From: Haliotis rubra
Lineage: Eukaryota
NCBI RefSeq assembly: GCF_003918875.1
Contig: NW_025764929.1
Coordinates: 186,001 to 250,000, forward strand
DNA: 64,000 nucleotides
Direction: 5' to 3'
In this document: in pieces, positions 7,115-38,148 of the stretch
How the letters are laid out: every line of letters starts with the position of its first letter
How positions within the stretch are numbered: position 1 is the first letter of the stretch
The notes under the pieces: model-generated
What the model saw: the letters and a program-made list of their open reading frames with translations, nothing else
The model's database searches: none
Told to the model about the DNA's origin: nothing
Position numbers and translations under genes: made by a program

Positions 7115-7713
7115 CTTTGTTTGATCTTCCGACCATGTCGTTTGTTGATCGCATCTTCAACACAGGCATGCAAGTGGGTCCAGTCGGCATGGCTTCGGCA
7201 GAGTTTATCACGCAGCCTTCGTTTGAACAAAATATTCGATTTCCACTTTTTATAACACGAGCACTTGTCTTTAGCTTTACCTTCACATCGACACCACGGT
7301 GTCGGGTTGAGGTCATCGACCATATGCATTGCAAATGTTGAACTTCCGGTCTTCTGGATTCGCACAAAGACAATGATGTCACTTCCGTTTGGACTAACAT
7401 TGTAGACATTGAGTAAGTCATTATGTGGCAAGTGGTCAGAAGATTGCAAGGTACGGTCAGAGGTATCACAGTCGGCCTTTGGATACATCGCACTTACAGC
7501 CTGTGGATACATCGCACTTACAGCCTGTGGATACATCGCACTTACAGCCTGTGGATACATCTCACTTACGGTTGGTACGTGTTCGTTTGTGTCCAGCTGC
7601 AGAAAACCCGGATAGTTTGAACCTATGTGATAAGTTGACCAAACAACAACCACCAGTACCATTGTACCAACTAAGAACAAACGGTTTTGTGGGACTAATT
7701 TCGACATCATCAT
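7115..7713 (-). CDS. HS6ST: Heparan-sulfate 6-O-sulfotransferase-like, first coding exon
   Basis: N-terminal signal anchor (LFLVGTMVLVVVVW), stem, then IVFVRIQKTGSSTF (5'-PSB), CRC...CSCY and HADWT. Donor CAAAG|gtaagt at 7115/7114. Confidence 0.9.
7480..7570 (-). repeat. Coding 24-bp tandem repeat (MYPQAVSA x3+) in the HS6ST stem
   Basis: tggatacatcgcacttacagcctg repeated in frame. Confidence 0.9.
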
Positions 7714-8116
7714 GCGTCTGTGATCACGAAGTAAAATGTTGACTTAGAATGTCTTTCTGTGATTTAAACTGGCATTTGATTCTTCGGGCAACGTAATATA
7801 TTATACGTACATTGAGATATCATATCACAAACGGGACGCCTGCTTTGTCACACACAAATATGGAAGTCGGAAAAAGCTTAATATAATAGTTCATACCTGT
7901 GTATGAACAAAAGATATGTGTATCTCCCCACGATCATGTGTTTGGCAATAAAAATGTAAATTTGAACTAAACTGAATACTTGAATCTAGTACATCTGTCA
8001 CATGAAGAACGAGTTCTAGGTGAAAGAAATGATCCGCGTTCAGTAAATTAAACATATTTGGGATCAGGTTACAGTGTGCGTAGATTGAGATTCCAGTGAT
8101 TTGTGCTTAAAAGCAC

Positions 8117-9236
8117 CTGAAAGGGTCTTAAGCCCATCCCCTGTGGTAAACTATGGTGGGTAACTGAAAGGGTCTTAAGCCCATCCCATGTTGTAAACTA
8201 TGGTGGGTAACTGAAAGGGTCTTAAGCCCATCCCCTGTGGTAAACTATGGTGGGTAACTGAAAGGGTCTTAAGCCCATCCCCTGTGGTAAACTATGGTGG
8301 GTAACTGAAAGGGTCTTAAGCCCATCCCATGTTGTAAAGTATGGTGGGTAACTGAAAGGGTCTTAAGCCCATCCCCTGTGGTAAACTATGGTGGGTAACT
8401 GAAAGGGTCTTAAGCCCATCCCATGTGGTAAAGTATGGTGGGTATGGTGGGTAACCATGAAAGGGTCTTAAGCCCATCCCTATGTGGTAAACTATGGTGG
8501 GTAACTGAAAGGGTCTTAAGCCCATCCCTGTGGTAAAGTATGGTGGGTAACTGAAAGGGTAAGCCCATCCATGTGGTAAACTATGGTGGGTAACTGAAAA
8601 AGCCCATATGTCTTAAGCCCATCCCATGTTGTAAAGTATGGTGGGTAACTGAAAGGGTCTTAAGCCCATTCCATGTTGTAAACTATGGTGGAAAGGGTAA
8701 TCTCATGTGGTAAAGTATGGTGGAAAGGGTCTGAAAGGGTCTTAAGCCCATCCCATGTGGTAAAGGGTCTTAAGCCCATATGGTGGGTAACTGAAAGGGT
8801 CTTAAGCCCATCCCATGTTGTAAAGTATGGTGGGTAACTGAAAGGGTCTTAAGCCCATCCCCTGTGGTAAACTATGGTGGGTAACTGAAAGGGTCTTAAG
8901 CCCATCTGTGGTAAAATGGGTGAAAGGGTCTTAAGCCCATCCCAGTATGGTGGGTAACTGAAAGGGTCTTAAGCCCATCCCATGTATGGTAAACTATGGT
9001 GGGTAACTGAAAAGGTCTTAAGCCCATCCCATGTTGTAAAGTATGGTGGGTAACTGAAAGGGTCTTAAGTGTGGTAAACTATGGTGGGTAACTGAAAGGG
9101 TCTTAAGCCCATCCCATGTGGTAAAGTATGGTGGGTAACTGAAAGGGTCTTAAGCCCATCCCATGTGGTAAACTATGGTGGGTAACTGAAAGGGTCTTAA
9201 GCCCATCCCATGTGGTAAAGTATGGTGGGTAACTGG
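8117..9236. repeat. 47-bp minisatellite
   Basis: Unit ctgaaagggtcttaagcccatcccctgtggtaaactatggtgggtaa, more than 20 copies, some degenerate. Confidence 0.95.
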
Positions 9237-9319
9237 TCAAGGTGCCAGAGGTTCGTGCAGGCAGATGAGCGCGTACCGTGTTATATCTTCATAAACATCA
9301 GGGACAACAGGGACAGGAA

Positions 9320-10445
9320 TGTGGGTATGTGGTGGTATGGGGACGTGGGTCTCTGGTGGTATGGGGATGTGTATCTTTGGTGCAATGTGGACGTGGGTAT
9401 GTGGTAGTATGAAAGACGTAGGTCTCTAGTGGTATGGGGATGTGGGTCTCTGGTGGTATGGGGACTTAGGTATGTGGTGGTATGAAAGACGTGGGTCTCT
9501 GGTGGTATGGGGATGTGGGCATCTGGTGGTATGGGGATGTGGGTCTCTGGTGGTATGGGGATGTGGGTCTCTGGTGGTATGGGGATGTGGGTCTCTGGTG
9601 GTATGGGGACGTGGGTCTGTGGTGGCATGGGGACGTGGGTATGTGGTGGTATGAAAGACGTGGGTCTCTAGTGGTATTGGGATGTGGGTCTCTGGTGGTA
9701 TGGGGACGTGGTTCTCTGGTGGTATGAAAGACGTGGGGATGTGGGCATCTGGTGGTATGGGGATGTGGGTCTCTGGTGGTGGTATGGGGATGTGGGTCTC
9801 TGGTGGTATGGGGATGTGGGTCTGTGGTGGTATGGGGATGTGGTATGGTGGATGGTCTGTGGTGGTATGAAAGACGTGGGTCTGTGGTGGTATGGAGATG
9901 TGGGTCTGTGGTGGTATGGAGATGTGGGTCTGTGGTGGTATGGAGACGTGGGTCTGTGGTGGTATGAAAGATGTGGGTCTGTGGTGGTATGGAGATGTGG
10001 GTCTGTGGTGGTATGGTGATGTGGGTCTGTGGTGGTATGGAGATGTGGGTCTGTGGTGGTATGGAGATGTGGGTCTGTGGTGGTATGGAAAGACGTGGGT
10101 CTGTGGTGGTATGAAGACGTGGGTCTGTGGTGGTATGGGGATGTTGGTCTGTGTGGTGGTATATGGAAAGACGTGGGTCTGTGGTGGTATGAAAGACGTG
10201 GGTCCGTGGTGGTATGGAGATGTGGGTCTGTGGTGGTATGGTGACGTGGGTCTGTGGTGGTATGGAGATGTGGGTCTGTGGTGGTATGGAGATGTGGGTC
10301 TGTGGTGGTATGGGGATGTGGGTCTGTGGTGGTATGGGAGATGTGGGTCTGTGGTGGTATGGAGATGTGGGTCTGTGGTGGTATGTGGATGTGGGTCTGG
10401 TGGTGGTATGGATGAAGACTTGGGTCTGTGGTGGTATGGATGGGA
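9320..10445. repeat. ~24-bp GT-rich minisatellite
   Basis: Unit gatgtgggtctgtggtggtatgg(a/g). Confidence 0.95.
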
Positions 10446-11721
10446 GAATCAGTAGGCTACTGACCACCAAGTAATTTTTTGACCTTTTCGATCTGTCCCA
10501 GTACGAAGTAATCACAGGTTACAGTGAACCAATATCACAGAGCTAGCGCCGTGATGTAGTGATATATATCACATACATGTAATCAACCCAGTGTCTCTGA
10601 GTTGTGTAGAACTCTGAAATCCGCAAAAATGTGGCATGAATTAACGCACTTTGACAAGAACCGATTGAAAGATGGCCAGCGAGACCGTTATTGTCGGTGA
10701 TTTATTCATAGGATGTAATATCAATATAGTACGTCAAATGGTATTTGTTTGGGATCGATAACCCGGACTGTTTATTCTTCTGGCTTCAAACATTTGCTCT
10801 ATTTTGTTGAAGTTCTTCCATTTGTTACCAAATATAATGGTTACCTGCAACTATCAGCACAATTCAACATATCGCCTACTTTAATATGAAACTTCACACG
10901 AGGAGAATTAATTATATTGGAAGCAGGTAGGACAAGGAAGTAAATCTGGGCGAATAACATTATGGCCAAGGCTAAACTGACCAATCCGCGGGTTCACATG
11001 ACCACAGTTTCATGTACTGTCCACCACCACGTGGTGGTGACTATGGCAACGTCATTTGCGTAATCGTTTTACGACCGCAACGTCAACTAATAACGTACTC
11101 TCCACTTCTTCGTACTCGACGTCCTAAGTTGGGTCAATTCTGGCACAGGTAAACCGTAATGAACGTGTACCTTGGTAAGTTTCCTGCAAAATGCGGATTT
11201 TGACGTCATGGAGTGGCCATCGAAATCACATGACCCCATACCCACGGATAGGATGCTCAAGGAAGAAGTCTTCGTGCATTAAGATGTCAACCCCAGAATG
11301 TTTAAGAGCTGGTTGCCATGTTGGTAGAACAATGCGCAGGTTGCTTTGTTCACGTATCAAGTCAGTCAATGAGAGACAACGTTCCCTTGCTGTTATGTGT
11401 GCGAAACGGGGGCTTACTTGGTAAAAGCTCCAATAAAGATGGCTAGACCCTGTGAAATCAACAAGTGACCCCAGCGTGCTACTGCGCACCTTAATGTTAA
11501 ACCATGATATAAAGTGTACGTTCATTACGTCCATTTCAACTATATAACCAGTATATTTGTCGTATTTTGCTACAGTTCTGTAATGTATTGTAATGTATCG
11601 CAGCTTATCCATATTTTATGTCAGTTATCGTAATAATTGTGTTATGATCGCGTAACATCCCTTGACTATAAAGTTAGTTATCTTCATCAGTCGAGGTGAA
11701 TACACAAAATGATAAAAGTGT

Positions 11722-11880
11722 ATGAGTGAGTTTGGCTCACAGCTATGCCGCGATGTGTCGGCTCGATGTGGAAGGATAACCCGAAGTCCCATTTCGGGAA
11801 AACACCACGAGTATTGTCCTGACAAATCTAGAAATATAATGGGGGCGAACTGAGATTAGAACCACGATCACTTGTGGCGT
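11722..11880 (-). mobile_element. tRNA-derived SINE-like repeat (family D), copy 1
   Basis: Near-identical to 12333-12515. Minus strand has a B-box-like ggtt(c)..atctcagttcgccccc and a (CACT)n tail. Confidence 0.55.
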
Positions 11881-11968
11881 GCCCAAGGACCACCAGCTCC
11901 ATTTAGCAAATTGCGGTGCCTTAATTGGACCTCCATGCCAATGACAATGGAATAACGTAATGCTAATA

Positions 11969-12331
11969 CCGTATTTCCTCTAATAAGCGCACCCGGCGCT
12001 TATTTTTTCAAAGGACCTCCAGACCCGGCGCTTATTAGAGGCCCGGCGCTTATTAAAATACCCTGTATTTTTAAAAGCGGGGGATGAGTACATGAAGTTA
12101 TGATTTAAGGACCATTCCTTAATATATTTATTTTTAGACCAAGGGAGAATACATTTGCGAAAATATGCAAAGGTCTATACCCGGCGCTTATTAGAGACCC
12201 GGCGCTTATTAGAGGCCCGGCGCTTATGTCTTAAAAAGCAGTGCTTTATCCCCGGCGGTTATTAGAGGCCCGGCGCGTTAATAGAGGCCCGACGCGTTAA
12301 TGGCGACCGGCGCTTTATAGAGGAAATACGG
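11969..12331. mobile_element. Tc1/mariner-pogo-type MITE with internal cccggcgcttattagagg repeats
   Basis: TIR ccgtatttcctcta / tagaggaaatacgg, TA on the left, repeated subterminal motif. Confidence 0.8.
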
Positions 12332-12332
12332 T

Positions 12333-12515
12333 GAGTGAGTGAGTTTGGCTAAACTTAGCTATCAGAGCAGTATTCCAGCTATGCCGCGGCGTGTCGGCTC
12401 GATGTCGAAGGATAACCCGAAGTCACATTTCGGTAAAACACCACGAGTATTGTCCTGACAAATCTAGAAATATAATGGGGGCGAACTGAGATTCGAACCA
12501 ACGTCACTTGTGGTG
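12333..12515 (-). mobile_element. tRNA-derived SINE-like repeat (family D), copy 2
   Basis: Direct repeat of 11722-11880, ggttcgaatctcag B-box on the minus strand. Confidence 0.55.
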
Positions 12516-12786
12516 GTCGCGTACCGATCCGTCGAATTTCTGATTTCTAAGTATTAAAATGCATTCGACGGATGAGCACTGTGATCTTAGCTATGAATTA
12601 GTTATCCAAACATTGGATCATACCAAGAAAAAGACGCAAGGAGTGTTGGATGGTTTGACTCTTTATTTTTTTTACTTTTGTACTTATCTTAGCCTACTCA
12701 TATGATACAATGAGAAATTGATGCAATAAATATATGTTTGGACTCTCTTTATTTTTGTACTTTTGTAGAAAATCGAAATTGATGCA

Positions 12787-13350
12787 TTAACCCTTGTCTT
12801 ATGGAGCTGGGTCCAAACGGGCCCCAAGGCTATAAATATCGTGAATATATAATATCTTTGACCAGCATTTAGAATTGCTCAGGGCAATCAGATTCATTAA
12901 CCTTTTTCGGGTCTTCTACCTTGTGTGACTAGAGCACATTTTAAATGGATTAACAAAACTTATTTGAACTTATGCAACGGGAGCTTGGTGGTTATCACTC
13001 TGATTGAAGTGATGGTGGATCTGATGAAGATTATCAACCATCTGAAGGATCTGAGAGCACAGAATCCGACTGTGACCCAGAGGATGACGCTACTTCCAAC
13101 TCTGACAATGAGACTGATGTACAAAGACAAGCTCCTGACAGGTATTACAGCCGTGATGGAGGACAGTGGTTCAAGGACCCAATGCCATTAGGTCGAACGC
13201 CTCAGAGAAATATATTATTCGCCAGCTGAATGGAAAAGTCACCAATCAAAATCCAAAATGTCTGTCCTGAAATTGTTGACGATATTGTCAAATGGACAAA
13301 TAAGTTTGCTGAAATTCAGTTTGGCACAGAGTGGAAGCGAAACTATTTAA
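12787..13350 (+). mobile_element. piggyBac 5' relic
   Basis: TTAA|CCCTT terminus, then a broken frame: acidic SDEDYQPSEGSES..., W..DP..GRTPQRNI, EIVDDIVKWTNKFAE (piggyBac transposase N-terminal pattern). Confidence 0.65.
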
Positions 13351-13692: not shown

Positions 13693-13866
13693 GTGAGTGA
13701 GTGAGTGAGTGAGTTGGGTTTTACTCCGCTTTTAGGAATATCCCAGCAATATCACGGCGGGGGACACCAGAAATGGGCTTCACACTTTGTACCCATGTGG
13801 GGAATCGAACCCGGGTCTTCGGCGAGACGAGCGAACGCTTTAACCTCCATGCTACCCCACCGCCCC
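13693..13866 (-). mobile_element. SINE family A
   Basis: Full-length match to family A. Confidence 0.88.
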
Positions 13867-16800
13867 ATCTTCATACGAAATACACCAACCTCACAGGTTT
13901 TATACACTACGCCCCTTTATTACCTACGTGGTCAACGTATGGGTAGTTGCATACTAATCTCGTACGTCACACGAGTGTCGTATCGCGTTGGCCTGTGTCG
14001 TAACGACTTGACATGAGATTCTAACGGTTTGATTGGATAACCGATGACCTCCTGATATCGCCCGTGAAACCTTCGCTGCTTTGGTACGACTAGTGGCGCG
14101 TGGCTGTTTGGGGTGATTGTGGGGCGGTGGGGTAGCCTAGTGGTTCAACTTAAATCCAAACTCGGTCAGCTGTGACAATGTTTTTGAGACACCCTGACAT
14201 GACCATCGGAAATGACCTCCAGACTGGTAGTCAGCCTTTTGACCACAGCTTTAGGGGATTGACATATAGATCTTACCTAGTATGACGCCCACTGCAAGTA
14301 CTGCTCTCATTGTGCTGTAGTTGTAAATACTTTAAGTGTCTCTCAGCGAGCGTTATATATACACGAAAAATATTGACATGCGATATTCAATAATAATAAT
14401 TTAAAAAAATGAAATTTCGTGGAAAACCAGCAGCTGCCAATATGTTGAAGCTTACGGACACAGCGTGTAAGTTCCACGCTGTCGCAGACGCCGTGGCGTC
14501 ACATGTAACGCATTCACCACGTGTACGGAGAATATTGCTGGTAATTACCCGAGCTCAACGGGTTTATAACATTAAATCACGACGGCCGGAATCAATGGTG
14601 AAATTCTTTCCACATTGCCAACTTTTTCATAAGATGAAGAGTGGTAGGTCTGTGGTTCAGTCCCTGACAGCATCATTCCAAAGTATGTTAAACGATGGTA
14701 CTTGTTGTCGCCCTGCCTGACGCTCGGTGTTTCGAGACTCAGTTTACTGTGTCTGACTGGGGCATCTATGTTAAGCTTCAGCATGCGACATCAGGAAATA
14801 CGGAATTTACAAAGGGTCTTACAGTCCCGTACCCTTTCAAAACACCGTGTAACTAATACTATTACAATATTACTTCACCCGCACTGGTTTATTGCTGTTT
14901 ACATCATGTTAGCGTCATTCAATTCTTACTCCGACGTAAGATCAGACTGACGTCACATCTGACGTCATTCCGAAGATTGCGGGCACCATTCAACAATTCT
15001 ACCGGTAACACGCCGTTCGTGTCCACTGCATGTTTTTGAAACGGATATAAAAATAGTTTAGAAATAAGGGGCAACAAAGAAAATATTACACTGCATAATA
15101 AATAATATGAAAATCAGTAATGTGTTATACTGTTTCAGGAGAATTCACGTATTACTGTTGCTTTCGCGCGGGAAGTACGATAACACTGACTCTCGTTTTG
15201 TAAAATCAATATGACCCATAAATCAGTATAAACTGTTGATTATCACAATTATTGCGATGCTATTGAATATCACGTCAACAATGCTATAATGCATTACGTC
15301 ACAAGTGTCAGTCAGTCTTATGCATATACTTCGGACGGCTTTCAATATGCATGATAAATCGTAAAAATGCATATGGTTACGTCCCTCCTGGGACTCCATA
15401 ATAAAACGATTAAGTTAAACATTTTATCTGGTTTACGGGAAGTGTGGGTCTCACCGCCAAAACGGCGTGGTCCCTATAGTTTTGTCTTCCGTTTTCGCGG
15501 CCATCTTGGATATCAACACGGCGAAATGTCTTCGAGGGGTGCAGCTATTGGCTCTTTTCTCACATATAGATGACACTTCGAGATACAAATATTTCTGGAG
15601 ATAATGTTAATATGATATATGTCTCTTTCAGATTCGATAATTTACAGGATGCAGTGTGTGTGCGTGGGGTGGTAATTGGGGATTTTAAGGGGGGTCACCG
15701 ATTTTGGTCGGGGGAGAAGAGTCGTCATCAATTTTGTGCACATGTACTAGGGGTTCATCAATTACGTACTTAAGAGAATGTAAAAAAAATGCTTAACAAT
15801 TATGGGAATGGGATGGGGTGGGGTCATTGATTTTGCACATGACAGGCGCGGGTGGGGTGGGGGTGGGGGTGGTGTGTGTGTGTGTGTGTCCCTGTACATA
15901 CATTTAAGAGGGGGTCATTGACATGCTTCTCGATAAAAATCGTGAACAACACTTAGACACACCCCATCCCCCACCCCACACACACGCTCAATAAATTATA
16001 AACGCTCCCTAAATATCAAAATAGGCTAAAGAACCCTGGCCCACAGTCACTGCATCCCAGACAGATGTAGGTAGTGTTAAAATTCTTGAGTTAGCTGAAA
16101 GGTGTTTCACGAGTCCATTGTTATTGTCCTATTATTGTTCAGTTTGGAAGTAACTATTTTATGTTACCCCATCTTATCATATATCGATAAGTTGGAAACA
16201 TGGCTTGAAATCAGTTTGTGATTTCATATACTAAACATACCTACGAGTAGATGACAAGCTGTAAAAATACAGGGTTCATCGAGAAGTGGTGCTAGATTAT
16301 CATACGCTACCCATCACTAAATTATATTATGACCGTTCTGTAAATTATAACTTTCTATTCGCATTTACGAAATTTATATATCTATAGTGAAATATTTATA
16401 AATGGATATGATATGTTTCCGCGTTTAAAATCAAGCTCTATTCGTATATATGTTCTTCTGGGAAATGTTGAGGACAAAACATAGATGAAAATCGTTTTGT
16501 AGGGTGGGCCCATGCTCAATTGTACATAAATAAATATAGCCAAGATAGGGGATATTCCGTAATTCTCTGTACGTGACCACAAAGGGGTAAGGGGTATTGG
16601 CCATTTTGCATCAATAGTTGTAAGGCATCGCAGAACAATCGGCAGATTTCGGGCTTGGTCGTTATATCCGAGAACAATAACGTCGCATCTGTTGTTCCCA
16701 CCAAGTTCAGTGTGTGACCCGATCTGCACCGTTTACCTCCCGATTAAGCCCGAGATGTTCTCACTGTACGTGCCGATTGGAATTTCAGGCGTAGGGTTAC

Positions 16801-17365
16801 CCGAGCTGAGGTCAGGGTGGCCTTATAAGGAGCACAGAATCAAAGGGATTTTTTAGCGGAAAACTGTAGGTCAAATAAATACATTTCATCGGGCTTGTTA
16901 TTTATATTATCAAAGAAATCCAATCTTGATCGGCTTTAAGTTCAACAAATAGGAAACATGTTTTGTTCATGAAGAAATTATTTACATTGAAAATGACACA
17001 TTGAAATGTTGCTAAGTCTTCTTGGAAACTCGTTTTAAAAAATAAGATTAATTCAGTGCATGATCTCTTTGTTGTCGAGAAGATAGCATTCTTCTTTGTG
17101 AGATTTCAATGCTTCATAAACTGACTGGTATTTGCAGGTTTATGAGTGAGTAAGTTTAGTTAAACGCCGTTATGAACAGTTTTTCAGTCATATCACAGCG
17201 ATTCAGCTTTGTTTTAGAGTATAAAGATACCGGATTCGAACTTACGATCATTGATTGCAAACATACCAAAGGGATGCAACTCTGCAAAGCGGCGCTTTAG
17301 ACCATTGGGCCTTTTTGACTGTGAGGAAATTCTTATACTAAATATACGATCGTTACAAAATACTG

Positions 17366-17717
17366 ACCGCCTCCGTGGTGTAGTGGTTAGAGCGTCCGCC
17401 CGGAGAGCGGAAGGTCGCGGGTTCAATCCCCGACGGCGTCATACCAAAAGACGTTAAAATATGGTACTTGTTGGTCCCTGCCTGGCGCTCGGTATTAATG
17501 GGTACAACAAGGACTGGTCGGCTCGGAGTCAGTATAATGTGTCTGAGTGGGGTATTCATGCTTCACTGCGGCATGGTATCTCAGTGGGCTAGCACTATAA
17601 AACCAGCTTAAGTCTGGGCTAGTACAAGCAGCCGCAAATACACATACAGACGCATGCACGTCGTCATATGAGCGAAATATTCTCAAGCACGACGTTAAAC
17701 CCAATTTCATCTCACCT
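17366..17717 (+). mobile_element. Long tRNA-derived SINE, family C (~350 bp; central domain resembles Meta/MESC-type SINE cores)
   Basis: A-box tggtgtagtggtt, B-box ggttcaatcc, core agtataatgtg..gagtgggg..cagtgggctagcactataaa, tail gaaatattct..cgacgttaaac. Head fragments at ~14640-14730 and ~42410-42485. Confidence 0.75.
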
Positions 17718-23148: not shown

Positions 23149-23173
23149 GAGCTGATTTAAGCTAACCACGTAC

Positions 23174-23961
23174 CAAGATCATTTGAACAGGTGTAGCCAT
23201 CACTGTCACTATGAGCAGGCTGCAAGAAACTAGCCATCTTGTGGCTCACAACTTTGTTAATGGCTCGGAATGAGATCTTGTTGATGTTGAGCAGTTGTTG
23301 ACAGATTTTGTGTAGGCTGTCATTCTCCATGACGACAATAGCATCAGACGTGCTGTACAGATGTGAGAGAGTCAACATGGCGTTGTAGTTCTGCACAATT
23401 ACCTCCCCTGTCTGGTAGGGCCACACAACTTGATTCATGATGAATGAGTGGGGATATTCATCCCGCAGAGCCTCTGTCGTGTATGCACCAACGCCTGACC
23501 CGGTCCCACCAGCTAGACTCAAGTAGCAGATAAACCCAGACAAGTTGTCACACTTTTCTGCTTCACGCCTCAACATATTTAATACATCATCCCGAACACG
23601 TGGTCCATGTACGCAGAACCCATGAGCCCAATTATTCCCTGAACCTCGTTTCTGACAGAATTGTTGTTTATCAGGATACTTCCATTTCCCACTTCTCTTG
23701 GCCTCCAAACAAGTCTGTGCTATTGCCTTGGACTCCATATCCACCATCACTGCCCGAGCATCAACTGTATCCTCCTTGCCTAGAGTTGTCTCCCTTGGAG
23801 AAAAGAATCTGTCCAGGGTCTCGTTAATATACTCCTGGTTCTTGCTAGGGTTGACCCCCGACCTGTGACGGCTTGGAATAAGCATCGTCAATGATTGTAG
23901 AGAAGAACTGACCACCAATCTGATTGCCACACTGACCAAGCTGGACTGTTATCACTGACAT
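23174..23961 (-). CDS. TUBD1: Delta-tubulin, first coding exon (apparent +1 in C5 run 23855-23859)
   Basis: ATG at 23961: [16 protein letters not shown]. Also [18 protein letters not shown], tubulin signature [18 protein letters not shown]. Donor CTTG|gtacg. The exon acceptor is at 24066, so a 5'UTR intron lies upstream. Confidence 0.95.
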
Positions 23962-24142
23962 GGCAGTATCTGGATTTGGGGACAGAACCAGGGTCCTTGT
24001 TCTTCAATAATACATTTATAAAGATGAGAACTTTGTGTTTACATCACCAGTGTCCCTGCTTGTCACCTGTAACAGAAACAAGAGTCTGTGAGTGATGGAG
24101 TGATTGAATGTGTGAGTTAGGCTTATTGCCTCTTAGAACAGT

Positions 24143-24187
24143 GGGGCAGTGGGGTAGCCTAGTGGTTAAAGCAATCGCTCGTTACAC
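24143..24187 (+). mobile_element. SINE family A 5' head (A-box), split by the P element; continues 32323-32376
   Basis: ggggcagtggggtagcctagtggttaaagcaatcgctcgttacac | element | gttacaccaaagacccgggttcgattcc. Confidence 0.9.
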
Positions 24188-24250
24188 CAGGGAGACTCTA
24201 TAAGAGGGAGTGGTCACTCCTCGAAAAGCCCCGGAGCTGTGCCTCGGCTC

Positions 24251-24377
24251 GTCACGTGACCAGTGTAGCCAATATGGCGGCAGCTTAGTATATAAGATTG
24301 AGCCTGGTCTATTTTCAACAGCTGAATACATTCGCCGAGTGTTGTGACAACTGATAACCCACACGTAGAAGGTAAGT
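24251..24377 (+). promoter_or_regulatory. Putative internal promoter and 5'UTR exon of the transposase gene
   Basis: Palindromic E-box gtcacgtgac 24251-24260, CCAAT, YY1-like aatatggcggc, consensus donor GAAG|gtaagt at 24371/24372. The first coding ATG (27541) directly follows an acceptor, so an upstream exon is implied. Confidence 0.5.
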
Positions 24378-24564
24378 CACCTATTCTGTCACTTCATTTT
24401 AAGTCAAATAATTGTTATTAGTGTCAGTATTAGTACAATAGATTTGTAGTAAAGTTTCAAGTCGGAGTGTTGTAGCTCACTGGCTTCCATTCTCGGTACA
24501 CAGCGGAGAAAGACTAAATTATGTCGCTAAAAAGTTCTTTCACACAATCGATTAATTTTTAGAA

Positions 24565-25335
24565 GGGAAATATACCTTTAGTTGAAAGTTGTATGCAAGT
24601 AATAGTGATAGTTTTATCATTTAAAAAAATTTGTTAAGGTATATTTGAGGTGTGTGAAAAATGTGAAATATCGCCGATGTGTGCTGACCCGCCATTGAAA
24701 TACTACAGGGCGATGTTTGAGTGCTTCTAGTTATTGTTCTAAAGACTTCTTTCACATGCACCTTTAATATTTATGAGGGGAATATACCATCAGATGAAAG
24801 GTGTTTGCAGGTAATAGTGATAGTTTTAAAACTTTAAAAAAATTGTGAGGGTGTATTTGAGGTGTGTGAAAAATGTGAAATTTCGCCGATCTGTTCTGAC
24901 CCGCCATTGAAATACTACAGGGCGATGTTTGAGTGCTTCTAGTTATTGTTCTAAAGACTTCTTTCACATGCACCTTTAATTTTTATGAGGGGAATATACC
25001 ATCAGATGAAAGTTGTATGCAAGTAATAGTGATAGTTTCATTATTTAAAAAAAATTGTTAGGGTGTAGTTGAGGTGTGTGAAAAATGTGAAATATCGCCG
25101 ATGTGTTCTGACCCGCCATTGAAATACTACAGGGCGATGTTTGAGTGCTTCTAGTTATGGTTCTAAAGACTTCTTTCACATGCACCTTTAATATTTATGA
25201 GGGGAATATACCATCAGATGAAAGGTGTTTGCAGGTAATAGTGATAGTTTTATAACTTTAAAAAAATTGTTAGGGTGTAGTTGAGGTGTGTGAAAAATGT
25301 GACATATAGTGGATCTGTTTTGACCAGCCATGGAT
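24565..25335. repeat. 212-bp tandem repeat (~3.6 units, ABAB) inside the P element
   Basis: gaggtgtgtgaaaa at 24647, 24859, 25071, 25283. Confidence 0.93.
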
Positions 25336-26221
25336 GCCTTTGATGCTTGAGTGTTGTAGTTCTAAAACATGTTTCTTTCTTGTTTATCTTAGTATATGAA
25401 AACTGGAAAGGTCTTTACAACGCTTTGTGATAAAGTGTTAAAATTTCTGTATTTGAGGGGTGTGTGACAGTGTCAGTTAACATTCTGTCAATATCCATGC
25501 CATTCCACACATGCAGGAAGATATCTGGATATTCTTTCATTCATTCACATGTAATGTCTTCCTATAATTCATTCATTCATTCACACATTGTTAAATTGGG
25601 AAGATAATTTAGAAATTGAGAGAAAAGGGCATGGGGCACTCATAAGCATAACAAACAGAAAGGCAGAAACATAATGAGACATTTTAATTTGTAACATATC
25701 ATTTCAAGCATATATCAAAATAGCTGAATAGTCCCATACTTCTGTATGGCTCTGAGGTTTGGGGACTACAAACATTTGATACACTAGAAAAAGTACATTT
25801 ATATGCAATAAAAAAGATTCCTTGGTGTGAAAGTTACCACTGGATATATTGGAATAAAAAAAAGACGATAGAATATGTGAAATGTGTGACTTGAATCTAA
25901 TTGAAGATGATTATGATTTTCGTGTTTGTCCAGCCTACCACAATTTAAGAAATAAGTATATTAAGAACTATTACTTTGTACATCACTATTTATAAATTTA
26001 TATCTCTATTAACCTACCCTAGCAAGGAACACCTGGAAAAGTTGTCGATGTTCCTATACCATGCCTTTCTTCACAGGAGAAATGTACTCTCTACTGCCTA
26101 ATAACAATATAGTCAGTATACATGTACTACAGGCCTGTGGCCTCTTAAGTGCAAAATAAAGACTTGATGATCAAGCTGAATAGTCACATAAACAGAAAGT
26201 CACTGAACAAAGCAGTGTCTT

Positions 26222-27261
26222 TTAGTCCTTGATGGAACCACGAAGAGATCTAGACTTCTTCCTTGGCGCTCTCTTAGCTTTCAAAGCCCTGCTTGCCTCT
26301 CGCTCCAGTTTTCTTGCCATTGCATGTGACCTTACTTTAAGAAACCTTTGGACGATCTCTTCCAACAGTTGACTACTGTTGTGCGAGTCTCCGACAAGAG
26401 AGTTCCAATACTTAATCACCAAAACATTGGTTAGAATGGCCTCTCTTAAGGACTGGTTGCCCATTTTGCCAGTTTTAAGCACGGGTACAGCCTTCCTTGC
26501 TTCTGTCTCAAATAGTCTGACAATGAGAAAGAAGGAGTCACAGGGTTGCTGGAGACCACCTCTGTCAATTTTATGTGACCACTTCCTTACATCGATGAGA
26601 AAGTTTTCCTTCTTTGAATCTGATGTCTCCACTAACTTGCTTATTGCTGACAACTTCTCCTTGTCCTGTTTAGCACTTTTCTTGGCAGAATAGATAAAAA
26701 ATCCTGCAATCAGATGCAGCACACTCTGATCTTGTTGGCTCAGTTCAGAATTCTGCTTTTCTTGGTCTTCCTCACATTTCTCTAACAGCAGCCTTATCGT
26801 AGCACTGACAACACCATCAATGAAACTTGTAATGAAAACAGGAACAAAACTCTCACTATTTCCAAGATCACTGCTGTCACAAATATCCCCTTCAACAGAA
26901 TCTAGTACATCAAAGTTCATTTTCAGTTTGTGTAATTGTTTGAAAAAAGCCTCACGCTCAGAACTGTTGAATCCGGATTTGCCAAAGTCCCTGAATATTT
27001 CTTTAAGATGGGTCGACAGTGGCTCTGTGAGTACCCCACTTGATTGACCACTAATTTTTTTTGCAAGGAAAACAATATGATATCCATGGGCTGATTCTTG
27101 CATCGTGTGGTATAGGCTGTTTTCCATCTCGGTAAGGGTGACCGAAGTAGCTTCTCTAAGAACTTGTTCGAGATCATCTGGCAACCAACTTGTTTGCTGC
27201 TTTGTTGTGTCTTCTTTCAGCACGACACCATGGTCTACTGTCAGCTGTAGATGATCTGCTG
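26222..27261 (-). CDS. P-element accessory gene B, exon 2 (domain resembling the P-transposase C-terminal region)
   Basis: Acceptor ttttgtttttacag|C at 27262/27261, phase 1, in frame with exon 31679-31934. Motifs LSQQDQSVLHLIAGF, KWSHKIDRGGLQQP, FLKVR and a basic tail. Confidence 0.8.
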
Positions 27262-27540
27262 CTGTAAAAACAAAATTATGTACATTATTAAATCATCATC
27301 AGTATCAGTATCAGCAGCAGCAGCAGCAGCAGCAGCAGGGCACTGAATGAATTAAAAAAGCAATATGAATTCAGACTCGACATTCAACAATAAACTGAAC
27401 TGTTTATACACTTGTACCTACTGTCGAATGTTTATTATGTTTATTATGTTGTCAATATTCTGTTTGTTATTGCATGAAAGATGTTAAGTCCATTAACATT
27501 ACAAAACATGAAAAATATATCAGTCTGTTTCTGCTTACAG

Positions 27541-27665
27541 ATGCCACGGAAAGTCAGAAAGAAGATTGGTCGAAAACCAAAGAGAGACATAAATAAGACG
27601 CTGATAGCTCCTTGGGAAACTCATAATAAATACAACTACTGTCCACATCAAAGTTTTGATCCAGG
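27541..27665 (+). CDS. P-element transposase, first coding exon (basic, NLS-like MPRKVRKKIGRKPKR)
   Basis: ttacag|ATG ... CCAGG|gtaagt, phase 2. Splices in frame to 28324 (cttgcag|G) and ORF 28364. Confidence 0.75.
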
Positions 27666-28323
27666 GTAAGTATTTTGGCTTTGATTTACGGGAGAAGGCA
27701 CAGCAACTGCCATTTTGAAAATGTTTGGACATTGTTTGGTCATCTGTAGGTCATATCACAAACTACGGCACATTGCCACACTAGCTCATGCACAAAATGG
27801 ATAAAGCAAAAACATCCGAAGTAGGAATTACTGCAGGTGTAGTTTATTTACTGAAGCACTTCACTGCTAACATATGAAGAAACTGTCCATTTTTAAGTAA
27901 AGATGATTTGTAAAAGTGTTTAAGTGTCATTGCAAATGTCATCAGTGCTGCTGTTTCGGGGTTTCTAGATTGTGCTGCCAAGTTTAAGATGTCCTAGTTT
28001 GTGCATTATTTAATCGTTGAATAAATTAATTCACACTTTTTGATTAACGATTATACAATAAGAAGTATGTACATATTTTCAGAATAAATTAAATGGGAGC
28101 TGTCCTAAATGCTGATAAGATTCTATTATTGCGAGAAATGAATTATTAATTTTTGGGGTATGCCGATGTGCCTTTACTCCACACCAAATTAATACCTTGT
28201 TTTCAAGAATTTTTTAGGTTCGGAGGGAAGTAAATAAGTCATACTGATTAACTAAAATAATGATAAAACCGATTCAATAGTCACTCATAACTATGTTACT
28301 GAAATTAAACTGGTTTCTTGCAG

Positions 28324-30939
28324 GTCCAGAGATTATCATGATCATCAGGACTGGTCGACAGCAATGCTGAGATTCTTCAATACACACAGCCAATCTCAAG
28401 ATGAACAAGAGTCAGAGCTGACAGATTCAGATGGAGCTACTGCCAATGAGTTCTATGTCATACTAGAGAGGCCATATATGTATCATCCCGATGAAGATGT
28501 AGACAGGTTTGTCACAAGACTTTCTCAAGAGCGGCCCCAACAAAAGTTTGCGGCTTTAAGGAAGAGTGTAAATGACAGTTCCAGAATCTTTCAGAACTAT
28601 TCAATCATCAACACACAAGGGTCTATGAAACTACTTCAACTTTATCCATCAGAGATACCTGCAGTGAAATGGACTGTGTCTGTTAATTCAAACTGTGTTA
28701 TGTCTATTTCTGTGCATCGTAAGATCATACCATCTGACCAAGATTTCTGGCTAGGAATCCCTAACATTGCTCATGGAGCAGCTGACATTAAGAAAGTGAC
28801 AGATAAACTTGAAAGTTTCAATGTTTGTTGTGGTAACTGGGAAAATAAGTATGTTGACCTTATTCCACCTGGGGCAGTGATTACCAGTAGCAAGTTCACA
28901 ACCTCTGCATTCAGAGAAGATAACTGTGGTTCAACTCATTATTCAGCAACAATTCGAAGCACAAAATGTTCCTTTCTCGTCAGAAACTCAGAACGATGCC
29001 AACCGTGTGTTGTATACAGAGGATCTCTATGCAAGAAGATATATCGAAATGAACATTCACCCCCAAGTTGTCCGGAGGATGCTGTGAAGTGGAATCGTCC
29101 CCATGAAACAATGTCAAGGACTCAGTTAGTGGAAAAAATAGGACATTTGAAGAGTACCAATGAAGCTTTGGTGAAGGACAATACCAAACTGAGAAGGCAA
29201 ATCCAAAAACAGATTGCTGCAAATGGTCAAATATTCAGTGAATCAACCAGTAATGAACTTGTACAACTAGTTGAAAGCCACACAAAAGAAGTTCACCAGA
29301 ATTACCCTGATGAAAACACTCTCCATCGCCTGTTTTGGGATGAACAGCTGAAATACAATCAACTTAGGGATAAGAGGGGCATGAGATGGCATCCCATGAT
29401 TGTAAAATGGAGCCTGTATTTACAACATAAGAGTCGGAAGACGTATGAAGCCTTGAGAGATTCTGGATTTATAACCCTTCCGTCAAATAGAACTCTCTTT
29501 GATTACTCTCATGTGCTACCAAATCAACTTGGCCTCAATCCTGAAGTGACAAGACATCTCATCTCCGAAATTGCTGGTTACAACATAAAGTGTAATGAAC
29601 ATACAGCATTTGTTGGTCTATTACAAGATGAGATCAAGGTCAAAGAAGGTCTTGTTTATGACAGTGCTTCAGATGAACTTATTGGCTACACCGACTTTGA
29701 CAAAACATCAAATAGCCTAATTGACTTGGAAAATGTCTTCACAAATGAAACAAGAAAACTTGCAACCTCTATGCTTGTGGTAATGGTGCGTGGAATTACA
29801 ACAAGTTTGAAATATCCATTCGCAGCTTTTGCAACCCTTGGTGTGACAGCAGATTTACTGTACAATATTATCTGGAACTGTGTGAAAACTTTGGAAATTG
29901 ATTGTGGACTTAAAGTACTGTTTGTAACATCTGATGGTGCCTCTCCTAATCGGAAATTCTTTGGCATGCACAAAGAAGAAAATTGCAATTAACTACCAAC
30001 TTACTTCACATGGAATACATATGCAACTCCTAGGCGTGAATTATTTTTTATATCTGATGTTCCACATTTAATGAAAACTACACGCAACTGCTTTGCAAAT
30101 TCAAGTAGCCACAAACTATCCAGAAAATTGTGGAAGGATGGAAAGAACATTTCATGGATGCATATAGTGAACCTATTTGAAGACTACTGTGAAACCAATT
30201 TGTACAGGCTTGTGCCCAAAACTGACCAGAGCTCATGTGGACTTAACAGCATTCTCACAGATGAAAGTAAACTTGGCGCATTGGTGGTTTTGAGTAAAAC
30301 TGTTCGCGGATGCTTTGGAAGAATTATATGGCGATCAAGTGATAGAAACGGTGAAATTCATAAGTCATATGAATAAGTTCTTTGACTGCTTGAATGTCAG
30401 AAGTCTATCTGAAGGCAGAAAAACAAGAAATAGGGATCGTGATATATATTGTGAAGGAGATGATGACCGCCTCACTTATCTTATGAATGACTTTCTTGGG
30501 TACTTTGATTCATGGAGAGTAAGTGTGACCAATCGTCCTGGAGACTTTACAAAGGGACAAAGATCATCTATGATGCTTAGTCATCAAACTTTAGAGGGAC
30601 TCCAAATATCAGTACGATCTATAGTGGAATGTGTGAGGTTCATGCTCAACGAAGGGGCAGATTTTGTACTGACACATAGGTTTAACCAAGATCCCCTGGA
30701 AGAACATTTCACAAGCACTATAGACAAAAGGGTGGATCAAATGAAAATCCCTCGGTGTATCAAGTGCTAATACTTTGTGCACTATGAGAACTGTGGGATC
30801 TCAAGCTATTGCAACGGTTCGGGGCAATATTACCAATAAACGCCGCTCTGCTGGGACAGTAAACCAACAACCATTGCCCAAAAAAAGAGGAATGTATAAG
30901 TGTAACCTGAACTCAGTCAATATGACTCAGACAAAGTGA
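28324..30939 (+). CDS. THAP9/P-type DDE transposase, main exon (in-frame TAA at 29990 plus several indels 30220-30770)
   Basis: RWHPMIVKW..YEALR..ITLPSNRTL, LLQDEIKVKEGL (D1), VTSDGASPNR (D2), SDVPHLMKTTRN, QMKVNLA, RFNQDPLEEHF (E), GGSNENP, VRGNI..PLPKKR. Confidence 0.9.
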
Positions 30940-31678
30940 CTTTGAAACAATGCCCAATGTGACTTGGAAAACTATACGCAGTGTTTAGAACAAAATGTCA
31001 GACCATAGGACTTATTACTTTGAAAAATCTACAAGTCCTTTAGGAAACCTTCTTGCTTGATTTTTAAATAGAAAACTAAGAATTCATAATAGATTTTTCT
31101 GCATTTAAGTTATAGTTACTCACACATTGTCTAGTTGCCTTCCAAAAACTATCCAATTCTGAGTACATCCTGGCTATAAGTATGTCAGATTGTCTGAATA
31201 AAATCAGAAACAATTATACGTTGCCATGTCATTTGGTGTTATCTATTACCTATTAGATTGTATTGTACACAGGTCACCTGCAGTGAAATCCTACTTGTAC
31301 TCATGGTTACCAAGAATACCTATGTAATTATCATTTTTTATATTTTTTTTATCCAGATACCTACATATTGTACATATTTCTGTACATATCTCCACTTAGA
31401 AAACCAACTTGCTGTCTGTTTAATCCTATAAGACATTTTCTTCAGACCAAAATAATGTAAAGTATTCACAAAGGACAGTTGTTTACATTTTGTAGTCCAT
31501 GTTTGTAATATCAAATAATCATATGTATGTTTATGAAGACAAGATTATTACTAGAGGTCTTATCTATATTCTCACATGACTCATATTGTTTTCATTTCCT
31601 AAAATAAAAGGATTCAGGTTATTTTCCTTTCATGTTTCGTCTTGTTGTGTCTGTTTTTTAAATTGTAAGTAAATTTAC

Positions 31679-31934
31679 CTTTCAGATCCTTTCTGTTATG
31701 CTTCTTCAGAACATGACTTCTGAAACCTGACTGAGACTTGTAGGTCTTGACACATAGAGGGCACTTGAACAATGGGCCGGTCTGCTCACTGTCACAGGTA
31801 TGCTTTCTCTTAGCCGCGACTTCCACGTCTTCAACACCCTCGTCTTCTGATGAACTGTGGTCGCTCCTGAAATCGCCCAAAAAGTCTGCTAACTCCAAAT
31901 CTTCCCAATCGATAAAATCACTGTTCTTCGCCAT
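31679..31934 (-). CDS. P-element accessory gene B, exon 1 (acidic N-terminus plus C2H2 zinc finger)
   Basis: ATG 31934, FKCPLCVKTYKSQSGFRSHVLKKH, donor AAAG|gtaaat at 31679/31678 (256 nt, phase 1). 256+1040 = 1296 nt = 431 aa + stop. Confidence 0.8.
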
Positions 31935-33781
31935 AACGTTACGTTACGTTCATATGAATGTTTCTTAAATATATAGCAAAACATGAATGAACTTACCTTC
32001 TCAACTCATGCTAACTGCGTAAAAACATCCTCAAATCCTCCTGTAATCCACACATCTATCAGGCGGCGACAGGAAGTGTAACCAGGTTGTTGTGACAACA
32101 TTCAAGGGGGCCTACTCCAATTTACCGAGCATTATTCCGGCAGTTGCCGATAGTTTCCGACTGATACAATAAACTGGCTGAAGTACTGTTAAACGCAGCC
32201 GAAGTTGCGCTGGGAACGAACCAAGTCACTGTGTGCGTTGGAGCATGACGAGGCACACGTTAATTAGTACAAATGGTAAAGAAAGCAAGCGAGTGACCTA
32301 TCCCTGTTGTAGAGTATCCCTGGTTACACCAAAGACCCGGGTTCGATTCCCCATATGGGTACAATGTGTGAAGCCATCATCTGACAAAAAAAACAACTAA
32401 AATAATAATAATAATCAAAACCGTAATTTTAGGATTCTGGCACTTGTAAGGAATGTGACCCAGTGAGTAAATCACAAAGAAACTACCCCATGAAATGGAG
32501 GACATGAAATTGAATGAGGCATAATTATTACCTTGGACAATAGATCCGAAGGTTTTATATTCATATCTTCCTTGGGACAATACAACCAAAACTGCCTGTG
32601 AGGCTTTAGAAGGCTATCTCATGCTCATGTGTACCCATGCATTCCTTGTTGATAAGAGGCAAACATTAAAGTCACTTTGCACAAGTAGACACCATATGTG
32701 TTAAAAGTCCTTCAGTGTTGGACAGGACTGAAGTCCCATAAACACTCAAGAGCCATAATGCTCATGTCACCCACACCGTTAGCCATCCAAGGACTCTCTG
32801 TCACTCTGCTTCCAGTGTTGCTTAACTGCACCTGATTTGTCACCTGATTTCGCTTAACTCAGGACCATATACTACAACCTTTCTGATGCTGTATTTTGTT
32901 TTGTTTAACACATCATGATGTTACTCATGAGACAGAAATAGCACATAAAACTGGCGGCACTGATCCACCCTCATTAGTTATGTTGACACAATGATCTGTC
33001 AGAGGCATTAAATTGAAATGAAAACTGTTGAAAATAAATTTGTAACATACAACAGAGGCAGCAAATGTCTGATGTAATATTGAAATGCTGAATATCATCT
33101 GTGGAATTTAGATTTTACTGCCCTTCCCTAAACATGGGAAAAACAGTTTTGTCATACTCATAGGTTTTTTTTTTTAAAAGTTTCAGGATGGGACCGTTTA
33201 TACAAGGCTGGTTTTAACAATGTAAGAGTGACAAGATGATTTGAAACCTATAGTAAACAATTTACATTGTTCTGTATAGCTGTCATGGTCAGCAGATTTG
33301 GAAGGATATATCATATGGAAATGAAAGTTGGAGATGATTACCCATGACTGTTGGCTGAATAACCTGGTACAAGCAGACGAATCCATGTCAAATGTATTTC
33401 ACCGGAATAAATTGTGCATCGTCCTCCTAATATCAAGCTGTATCATAGACGTAAGCATATTGTTGACTGCAAGTGTGTCTGGGCGAAAATGTCTTTCGCC
33501 AATCTTCTCAGAATCCAACTTGCCCGGAATGTCTGTCTAGTAAGCCAACAAGAGTTCTTCCCCTTGAATTCTAAATGTTCAACGCAAGGAAACGAATGTT
33601 ACCTATACATTGAATGTCAAAACCTAGGGAATTGCTTAATATATTCAAGCAAACTTACAAATATGTTCATCAACTTGTTTGTATTGTAACTATATGTTAC
33701 AACAAAGCCAATGCCATATGCATTAACACATCATAAATCCGTATTTCAGTCAATGCGTTGTTTTTTATATAACCTTCAAAG

Positions 33782-36975: not shown

Positions 36976-37983
36976 AGGGACATAACTGTGGGTGATTTAC
37001 AGTGTCCTAGAATGATTGCTGATGACAGATATCACGTAACCATGGTAACAAGTACAGTGAGACTTTCTGAACATGTTGTTACTAAAAATATGTAGATGTT
37101 TGGAGACCATCTTGAAAATATGACAGCAGATCCTAGTGAAAGAAAAGGTCAAAGTTTCTTTCTTTATGAAGTGATACCATCAAAGTGATGGAATAAGAAT
37201 CGTGGTTTGCCTAAAGGATGTCTGACATAAAAATTCAAACCTCAATGCTTTTGACATCCAGCAAGTTTCTGATAAGACCAACAAGGTCTACTCTACAATA
37301 CAAAGCAACATTTTGTACCGTTGGTCTACTTATGTACAGTATGCCTTGAATGTCCGAATAATTCCTGCATCCATCGGTTGAATATGAGATGTGGTATTTG
37401 GTCACATTTCGCAAAGTTAGCGAAGCACACTTGTGACTTGCAACGTTGTTATGGTTCGTGAACATGACTTACAGCATCCGGACTGTGAAGCAGTTTACTG
37501 TTTATTTTACTGATTGGTTACAGCTACTTACCGTCCGGTTCCGGAAACCGAATTTCTGGATTATCGAGGCAAATTAAATAGGCATAGATTGGTAACAAGC
37601 TAAAATCGTCCGGGAGCAGGAGTCGGGACATCCGGATTATCGGAGTCCAGACTAACGGGGCTTCACTGTATTATGTAGTTATGCCTACTTATCGATATGT
37701 AATATCTGCAAAGAAAGAATGGTCAATGTAACACCGACTAAGGCCCTATGCCAAACCTGTAAATACTATCTATTTATGTATGCCTTGTATATGTGAACAT
37801 CTGTTCATAATTATAATGTCATGTAAACATGTACTGGGAAATAAAAACGTTAAAATAAAAAGAAAAAAAGATCTACTCTTTCGATATTATGTGAATCAAG
37901 ATCTGTCAGCACAGTTGAAGCGGTAATGATGATTTGTCTGGAGAAGCATGTACAGTGTGACTGACCCCTTCTAAAATTTATGT

Positions 37984-38148
37984 GGGTGGTGGGGTAGCCT
38001 AATGGTTAAAGCGTTGACTCGTCACGCCGAAGACCCGGGTTCGAATCCCCACATGGGTACAATGTGTGAAGCCCATTTCTGGTGTCCCCCGTCGTGATGT
38101 TGCTGGAATATTGCTAAAAGCGGCGTAAAACCAAACCCAGTCAGTCAG
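37984..38148 (+). mobile_element. SINE family A
   Basis: Full length, TSD ~tctaaaatttatgt. Confidence 0.9.

Follow-up and report, generated by a model that had tools for sequence, protein, structure and literature searches.

In a 64,000-nt stretch of the genome of the blacklip abalone Haliotis rubra (contig NW_025764929.1, positions 186,001-250,000, assembly GCF_003918875.1; hereafter the window) we identified an 8.13-kb insertion of a P-type transposon that carries two genes on opposite strands between inverted ends. One of these (gene A, plus strand) encodes the catalytic core of a P-superfamily transposase, and the other (gene B, minus strand) encodes a protein in which a single C2H2 zinc finger precedes a domain folded like the C-terminal domain (CTD) of P transposase. 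We consider it likely that this insertion, which lies in a short interspersed element (SINE), is an autonomous-type, two-gene P-superfamily transposon in which the transposase is split between the products of A and B. The two genes are also interleaved, as the intron of gene B spans the whole of the transposase coding region (Table 1).

The terminal inverted repeats (TIRs) of the element agree at 26 of 31 positions and are accompanied by a repeated 8-mer, and the flanks of the element (24130-24188 and 32331-32400) join as the two halves of a tRNA-derived SINE, which was the target of the insertion. An uninterrupted copy of this SINE located elsewhere in the window (13770-13880, minus strand) reads straight through the insertion site and represents the empty site; the 8-mer is present there once, in a diverged version (core CTCGCC versus TACACC), and a SINE copy in Haliotis cracherodii has CGTCACACCAAAGAC at the corresponding position. 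Because TIRs, a target-site duplication and an intact SINE as empty site are all present, we conclude that the 8.13-kb element is a genuine insertion, flanked by a duplication of 8 bp as is usual for P elements. The first-pass annotation of the window, made from the sequence alone, had proposed an element of 8.1 kb bounded by TIRs and a target-site duplication, and this is borne out by the 26/31 TIRs, the GTTACACC repeat and the empty SINE site. The SINE itself contains the sequence GGGGTAGC...GGTTCGATTCCCC, and related copies are found in the H. cracherodii locus discussed below (L002 13085-13243 and 17757-17916).

Gene B is intact in the window. Its splice sites are canonical, with exon 1 (31934-31679) ending in AAG/gtaaat and exon 2 (27261-26222) following ttgtttttacag, and the exons join in frame to give 1296 nt that encode 431 aa with a single terminal stop, as had been predicted initially. 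A script that looked for GT-AG joins reproducing the RefSeq protein returned exactly the 31679 to 27261 structure, and the spliced product is identical to XP_046564295.1, which is isoform X1 of LOC124273115. Isoform X2 (415 aa, compared with 431 aa for X1) uses a donor 48 nt upstream, the isoforms differing in the donor alone. A 333-codon open reading frame (ORF) at 26225-27223 on the minus strand is likewise 100% identical to part of the RefSeq LOC124273115 protein. Gene B is already in public annotation as an uncharacterized protein, and LOC124273115 is located on contig QXJH01001032.1 of GCA_003918875.1.

Gene A belongs to the P superfamily on the basis of its conserved domains, which are present both in the window ORF and in its homologues. 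The ORF at 28364-29989 matches PF21787 (E 3e-22), the family for the N-terminal RNase H portion of transposases of the P type, and the pieces that follow position 29989 match the GTP-binding insertion domain in fragments (weaker PF21788). The predicted start of the protein, MPRKVRKK (MPRKVRKKIGRKPKR), resembles the basic N-termini of its homologues (MPRRKKMPGIGQKKK, MPRKKKSRLRV and MPRLKRGKKSIGKPKR). LLQDE, FVTSDG and NQDPLEEHF, candidate motifs for the catalytic D, D and E residues (D230, D303 and E531), can be read in the window frames and, in a homologue, align with Drosophila motifs, a correspondence that holds at the motif level only. The first coding exon (27541-27665) joins position 28324 in frame, as proposed in the first-pass annotation, but the region 28324-30939 is not the open coding exon that was then envisaged. 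It is interrupted by an in-frame TAA (29990-29992), which lies within a conserved stretch of the transposase, and by five frameshifts (near 30210, 30276, 30305, 30713 and 30767), and tblastn alignments of homologues across the main exon switch from frame 2 to 3, back to 2 and then to 1. Small additional introns were considered as a cause of these breaks and rejected; the breaks are 1-2-nt indels and are regarded as defects since the homologues run on here without interruption. Contigs assembled from a conspecific DNA run carry an open frame at every disrupted position through small indels and are the sole contig at each, and the indel contexts are mostly not homopolymers. Either other copies are open where the window copy is broken, or the defects are assembly errors; as assembled, the window copy has an intact gene B and a broken gene A.

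The transposases of this clade lack two domains familiar from other P-type enzymes. No THAP domain was found at E<=1 in the homologues P0003, P0011 and P0017, nor at E<=0.1 in the window ORFs. The clade's proteins carry PF21787, PF21788 and PF21789 only, and end about 50 aa after the last motif (PF21789). Homologue P0003 matches 6p5a_A (E 6e-14) and its alignment to the Drosophila protein also ends at this point, without the CTD, so that the transposases of this clade have no CTD fused to their catalytic domain. A Cys-rich stretch is located at 28800-29100 (residues ~150-240 of the 542-aa ORF), reads CCGNWENK...CGSTHY...CSFLVRNSERCQPCVVYRGSLC and has no Pfam match. It lies ahead of the helix-turn-helix (HTH)/RNase H region and may serve as a DNA-binding module that replaces THAP.

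The CTD appears instead to be encoded by gene B. AlphaFold models of gene B proteins were compared exhaustively, with no prefilter, against 48,161 solved chains. For the H. rubra protein (pLDDT 75.7) the top match was 6p5a_B, which comprises residues 617-734 of Drosophila P transposase (Z 10.9, root-mean-square deviation 2.4 Å), with 115 of the 118 residues aligned to model residues 255-411; no other match exceeded Z 8, the next having Z 7.4. The Ptychodera protein, which is 26% identical (pLDDT 78.5), gave the same single top match, 6p5a_B (Z 9.8, 118/118 residues; next Z 6.6), and although helical folds can reach such Z values by chance, 6p5a_B stood alone at the top on both occasions, the whole of the resolved domain was covered and this was the protein expected beforehand. 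In addition, Pfam THAP9_C is on record for the B proteins of Pecten, Ptychodera and Mytilus, and Tnp_P_element_C is the only recurring family other than fingers (5/20 members, at the LxYIAG motif). The CTD of Drosophila P transposase is all-helical, is joined by a flexible disordered linker, lies against another subunit and, in the strand-transfer complex, touches the DNA of the transposon as well as that of the target (PMC7776569). It ends in an unmodelled basic tail, the last 17 residues (PMC7776569), and this fits the end of chain B of 6p5a at residue 734. The gene B product similarly ends in a basic tail, and the gene A product ends ~50 residues past the last catalytic motif, at the position from which the Drosophila protein continues into its disordered linker and CTD; the split therefore falls at a natural hinge. 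We therefore read gene B as the missing P-transposase CTD fused to a C2H2 finger, and not as cargo or an unrelated second gene.

Homologs of gene B are widespread. An exhaustive HMMER search recovered 325 cluster representatives at E<=1e-3, of which 12 were retained at E<=1e-30, and many of the best matches are full length (410-480 aa). Named members of the family occur in Haliotis, Batillaria, Patella, Pecten, Mytilus and the hemichordate Ptychodera, often as several near-identical copies per genome. The family alignment contains an acidic DFLxWD motif, one C2H2 finger, the motifs LxYIAGxII, W...DRGGLxxPS and FLxVRG, and a basic SLRxxLK end. Protein-atlas searches with gene B returned zinc-finger or unrelated clusters, and a word-indexed protein search with the family alignment found two family members only, zinc-finger words being suspected to fill the candidate list.

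Linkage to the transposase was examined in the DNA around six gene B-family proteins or their transposases. In H. cracherodii (L002) a transposase 45% identical to that of the window (10001-13042, plus strand) lies tail to tail with a gene B homologue (15976-13721, minus strand), and the pair is enclosed by 402-nt inverted repeats that are 97% alike (7545-7946 and 17016-17417). Both genes look intact, and judging from this the element may have been active recently. These TIRs are made of many short repeats with ACGTAAATTGTAATA, which are candidate protein-binding sites. Thus the pairing of a C2H2-CTD gene with a THAP-less, CTD-less transposase inside one pair of TIRs is found both in the window and in H. 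cracherodii. Convergent A/B pairs also occur, at the level of gene order, in Batillaria, where the two genes carry adjacent locus tags, and in Pecten, Mytilus and Mercenaria; some of these pairs have a truncated member. In Ptychodera the genes have the same relative orientation but are 8.5 kb apart and may not belong to a single element. Capture of gene B as a one-off event is ruled out because it is linked to the transposase across species. The recurrence of gene B beside this transposase clade also supports the initial view of a two-gene element, with its genes on opposite strands and promoters expected at both ends. As to whether the nested layout recurs, a question raised at the outset, the linkage of A and B does recur whereas the nesting is not found outside H. 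rubra, the genes elsewhere being convergent.

These observations suggest how a divided transposase could operate. Protein A represents the catalytic core, comprising a basic N-terminus, a Cys-rich/HTH region and RNase H with its GTP-binding insertion, and has neither THAP nor CTD. Protein B has an acidic N-terminal motif, one C2H2 finger, a helical region, the CTD-fold domain and a basic tail. We infer that B would join a dimer of A in trans and supply the transposon and target DNA contacts that are made by the fused CTD in Drosophila, while its zinc finger may contribute to recognition of the transposon ends. The inverted ends enclose A and B in a tail-to-tail arrangement in most lineages, but all of A has come to lie within the conserved phase-1 intron of B in the H. 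rubra family, and the 5' intron of A, running from a promoter by the left end to the acceptor that abuts the ATG, would probably contain the last exon of B. More tentatively, and with rather less confidence, we propose that these elements represent an ancient P lineage (in molluscs, a hemichordate and possibly echinoderms) with an obligate two-subunit transposase, the catalytic core of which has lost both THAP and CTD while a separate C2H2-finger protein provides the CTD in trans, and that in abalone, where the catalytic gene would have moved into the intron of its partner, the subunits may be transcriptionally coupled.

The gene B intron provides a marker for the origin of the interleaved layout. 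It is in phase 1, inside an Ala codon after 'LK', in four taxa, and differs widely in length (4417 nt in H. rubra, 813 nt in H. cracherodii, 601 nt in Pecten and 256 nt in Ptychodera); Mytilus has lost it. Because the position and phase of the intron are conserved and the transposase lies within it in H. rubra only, parsimony suggests that the convergent layout is ancestral and that interleaving is derived in the H. rubra family, either by movement of the transposase gene into the B intron or by movement of the last exon of B across the transposase. The interleaved form is represented by a second H. rubra copy (L003), which is located on another contig and was reached via the H. rubra protein P0034. 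This copy is collinear with window positions 24569-32198 at ~90% identity, apart from two extra insertions in L003, and has the same gene order, namely B exon 2 (minus strand), transposase (plus strand) and B exon 1 (minus strand). It lacks both termini and its gene B is frameshifted; it contains one unit (2006-2331) of the 212-bp repeat found in the left part of the window element. The window copy and L003 share element-internal sequence only, which suggests that L003 arose when an element with the interleaved layout transposed, and not by segmental duplication.

It is plausible that the nesting is reciprocal. In all three elements compared, namely the window copy, L003 and the distant relative in H. 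cracherodii, a strong acceptor abuts the transposase ATG, and a conserved non-coding first exon is therefore implied. In the window, promoter-like motifs and a consensus donor close to the left end (Table 1) could define such an exon, in which case the 5' intron of A (24372-27540) would contain the last exon of B. Since the B intron holds all of A, the B pre-mRNA is antisense to the entire A gene, and mutual transcriptional interference or antisense control could result. Close to each end of the element there is an inward-facing copy of the 11-mer AGAAGGTAAGT, which is a consensus splice donor (24361-24371, plus strand, and 32001-31991, minus strand); the right-hand copy is 63 nt upstream of the gene B ATG. 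Alignment of the two subterminal regions revealed no shared sequence beyond the TIR and this one 11-mer. A (CAG)9 microsatellite (27312-27338) separates the gene B acceptor from the transposase ATG, and the DNA contigs break there.

Expression was assessed from the three small RNA runs in which any of the stretch is represented, together with the one DNA run of the same species. RNA contigs cover 31312-31976 at low depth, including exon 1 of B with 0-1 mismatch. The reads from the three RNA runs and the DNA run contain no splice joint for either gene, and the loose-end sequences of contigs have no match in the window or in the other loci compared. A further run from the genome study, of transcriptome size and unrecorded kind, contains 42% of the exon-2 words. 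Some RNA contigs (runs X1, X2 and X6; ~31312-31780) join a left-type TIR (...TTTACATTC AGGGAGACTCTAT...) to sequence starting near 31312. These contigs therefore include a family member with an internal deletion, which is represented at a depth above that of the full element.

Several results weigh against a functional transposase divided between A and B. Concerning the identity of the B domain, local Pfam searches gave weak CTD matches (E ~0.05); a Foldseek comparison of the B model with the PDB and Swiss-Prot AlphaFold models yielded no P transposase or THAP9, the matches being noise (TM score <0.2); and the gene B family profile reached C2H2 fingers only when searched against PDB sequences. 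Concerning linkage, Amphiura filiformis has an intact, intronless transposase with a mere remnant of the N-terminal motif of B nearby (MESNFVKWDDMDLDFLFGE only; L008 13679-13909, minus strand, located 1 kb downstream of the transposase and opposite to it in strand), neither a finger nor a CTD exon having been found within 10 kb, and from this case A may not always travel with B. Concerning expression, the three small RNA runs contain no RNA contig on B exon 2 and no spliced read, and the one RNA contig that breaks exactly at donor 31679 derives from a paralogue 94.5% identical, the continuation of which is absent from the window. Finally, gene A is disrupted in the window copy and gene B in L003.

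The Amphiura transposase, intact with no intact B nearby, raises the alternative that gene B encodes a regulator rather than an essential subunit, that is, a repressor or titrating factor that would limit transposition by binding either the DNA of the element or the transposase, a role like that of the Drosophila 66-kDa and KP proteins. A zinc finger of DNA-binding type combined with a domain expected to dock on the transposase would be appropriate for such a protein, and a convergent or antisense layout suits negative control. However, every transposase of the clade is without a CTD, whereas in Drosophila this domain touches both DNA partners of the strand-transfer complex, and B has been kept linked to A across phyla when a dispensable repressor would be more easily lost. 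We therefore regard the regulator explanation as unlikely.

Damage to both copies (A in the window; B and the ends in L003), together with the missing exon-2 RNA contig and the restriction of the layout to H. rubra, would also be expected if the interleaving were a dead rearrangement, in which the last exon of B moved across the transposase in one defective ancestor and the 4.4-kb splice is a mere prediction that was never functional. This too seems improbable to us. The presence of copies on different contigs that share only the interior of the element implies that the rearranged form has spread, and the splice sites are canonical in an intron that retains its ancestral position and phase. 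Furthermore, the 431-codon frame of B is fully open in the window, RefSeq holds two isoforms that differ only in the donor, the DNA contigs of the species are open at every disrupted transposase position, and exon-2 words occur in the transcriptome-sized run of unrecorded kind.

It is highly unlikely that gene B is a domesticated host gene retained here after death of the transposon. An intact B, annotated as protein-coding with two isoforms, beside a disrupted A has the appearance of such a gene, but both TIRs and the target-site duplication persist inside the SINE, as expected of a young, lineage-specific insertion. No close orthologue turned up among the proteins annotated in other Haliotis species, the nearest relative having 31% identity, and the family is multi-copy in several genomes. 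We thus retain the reading of a transposase split between A and B.

Table 1. Features of the H. rubra element, in window coordinates (a full stop in the strand column marks features given without strand).
Feature	Position	Strand	Basis or remark
Left target-site duplication GTTACACC	24181-24188	.	identical 8-mer at 32323-32330
Left TIR AGGGAGACTCTATAAGAGGGAGTGGTCACTC	24189-24219	+	26/31 complementary to 32321-32291
Putative transposase promoter and non-coding first exon	24253-24371	+	read from sequence
CACGTG	24253-58	+	within putative promoter
CCAAT	24269-73	+	~100 nt upstream of donor 24371
TATATAAG (TATA)	24289-96	+	~75 nt upstream of donor 24371
Donor AG/GTAAGT	after 24371	+	sole consensus donor between left end and ATG
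Tandem repeat, 212-bp unit, 3.7 copies, 91% alike	24552-25331	.	in left part of element
Gene B last exon with stop codon (helical region, domain resembling the P-transposase CTD, basic tail)	26222-27261	-	open frame, 100% identical to LOC124273115
Gene B intron, 4417 nt, phase 1, holding entire transposase coding region of opposite strand	27262-31678	-	GT-AG search
Transposase (gene A) first coding exon (MPRKVRKKIGRKPKR...)	27541-27665	+	ATG directly after acceptor ttctgcttacag; joins 28324 in frame
Transposase (gene A) main exon (HTH region; RNase H carrying the GTP-binding insertion)	28324-30939	+	Pfam PF21787, PF21788; open to 29989, then disrupted
Gene B first coding exon (acidic motif DFIDWED plus a single C2H2 zinc finger)	31679-31934	-	open frame; RNA contigs over 31673-31976, 0-1 mismatch
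Right TIR	32291-32321	-	reverse complement matches left TIR at 26/31 positions
Right target-site duplication GTTACACC	32323-32330	.	one extra G before it, at 32322

An Rfam search of the element gave no match, and a scan for bacterial-type promoters was set aside as irrelevant to a eukaryote host. Elsewhere in the window, an ORF just left of the element (23157-23939, minus strand) encodes tubulin-type motifs (GGTGSG) and is probably an exon of the 451-aa gene annotated beside gene B (L001 17974-21343). Window positions 8001-12000 show a strong G-over-C skew (0.42 and 0.21) and a GC content above that of the rest of the window, and ARAGORN predicts a tRNA-Leu(TAA) at 37976-38060 on the plus strand.

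A literature search, which did not extend to Repbase and Dfam, found no two-gene or split P/THAP9 element, second ORF or accessory protein, nor was a two-gene or split P element found in a survey of bivalve transposons. The split P type is widespread but apparently undescribed. If a natural lineage does have a separate CTD protein, this would show that the CTD can work in trans, which fits the Drosophila strand-transfer complex, where the CTD, tethered by a disordered linker, lies beside a neighbouring subunit. It would also provide a natural two-component system in which to dissect the roles of the CTD and the DNA-binding module, and the P superfamily would join the cut-and-paste families that need a second protein. 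A practical point is that transposon genes probably account for hundreds of the 'uncharacterized C2H2 proteins' annotated in molluscs and hemichordates. The interleaving in H. rubra would represent a rare case in which two parts of one enzyme are encoded by interleaved antisense genes.

P elements and THAP9, their domesticated human relative, are treated as single-protein systems. Drosophila P, human and zebrafish THAP9 and Pdre2 have in common with the H. rubra element the 8-bp target duplication, the TIRs and the CTD fold, but each consists of one gene encoding one polypeptide, whereas the abalone element has no THAP domain and its CTD is predicted to reside on a separate C2H2-finger protein encoded on the opposite strand. 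A two-gene layout is known from PIF/Harbinger and ISL2EU elements, in which the same TIRs enclose genes for a catalytic transposase and for a DNA-binding partner presumed to cooperate with it. These elements belong to an unrelated transposase superfamily and their partner is of the Myb/SANT type, in contrast to the split P partner, which would be a detached domain of the transposase itself. Galileo and 1360 elements have long structured ends, and Galileo encodes a single THAP-bearing transposase; the 402-nt TIRs of short repeats in H. cracherodii recall such ends, whereas those of H. rubra are short (~31 nt). Finally, the arrangement resembles the nested antisense genes found generally in eukaryotes, in that one gene lies wholly within an intron of the other on the opposite strand. 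In H. rubra, however, a single mobile element carries both genes, their products are probably two portions of the same enzyme, and the nesting may be reciprocal.

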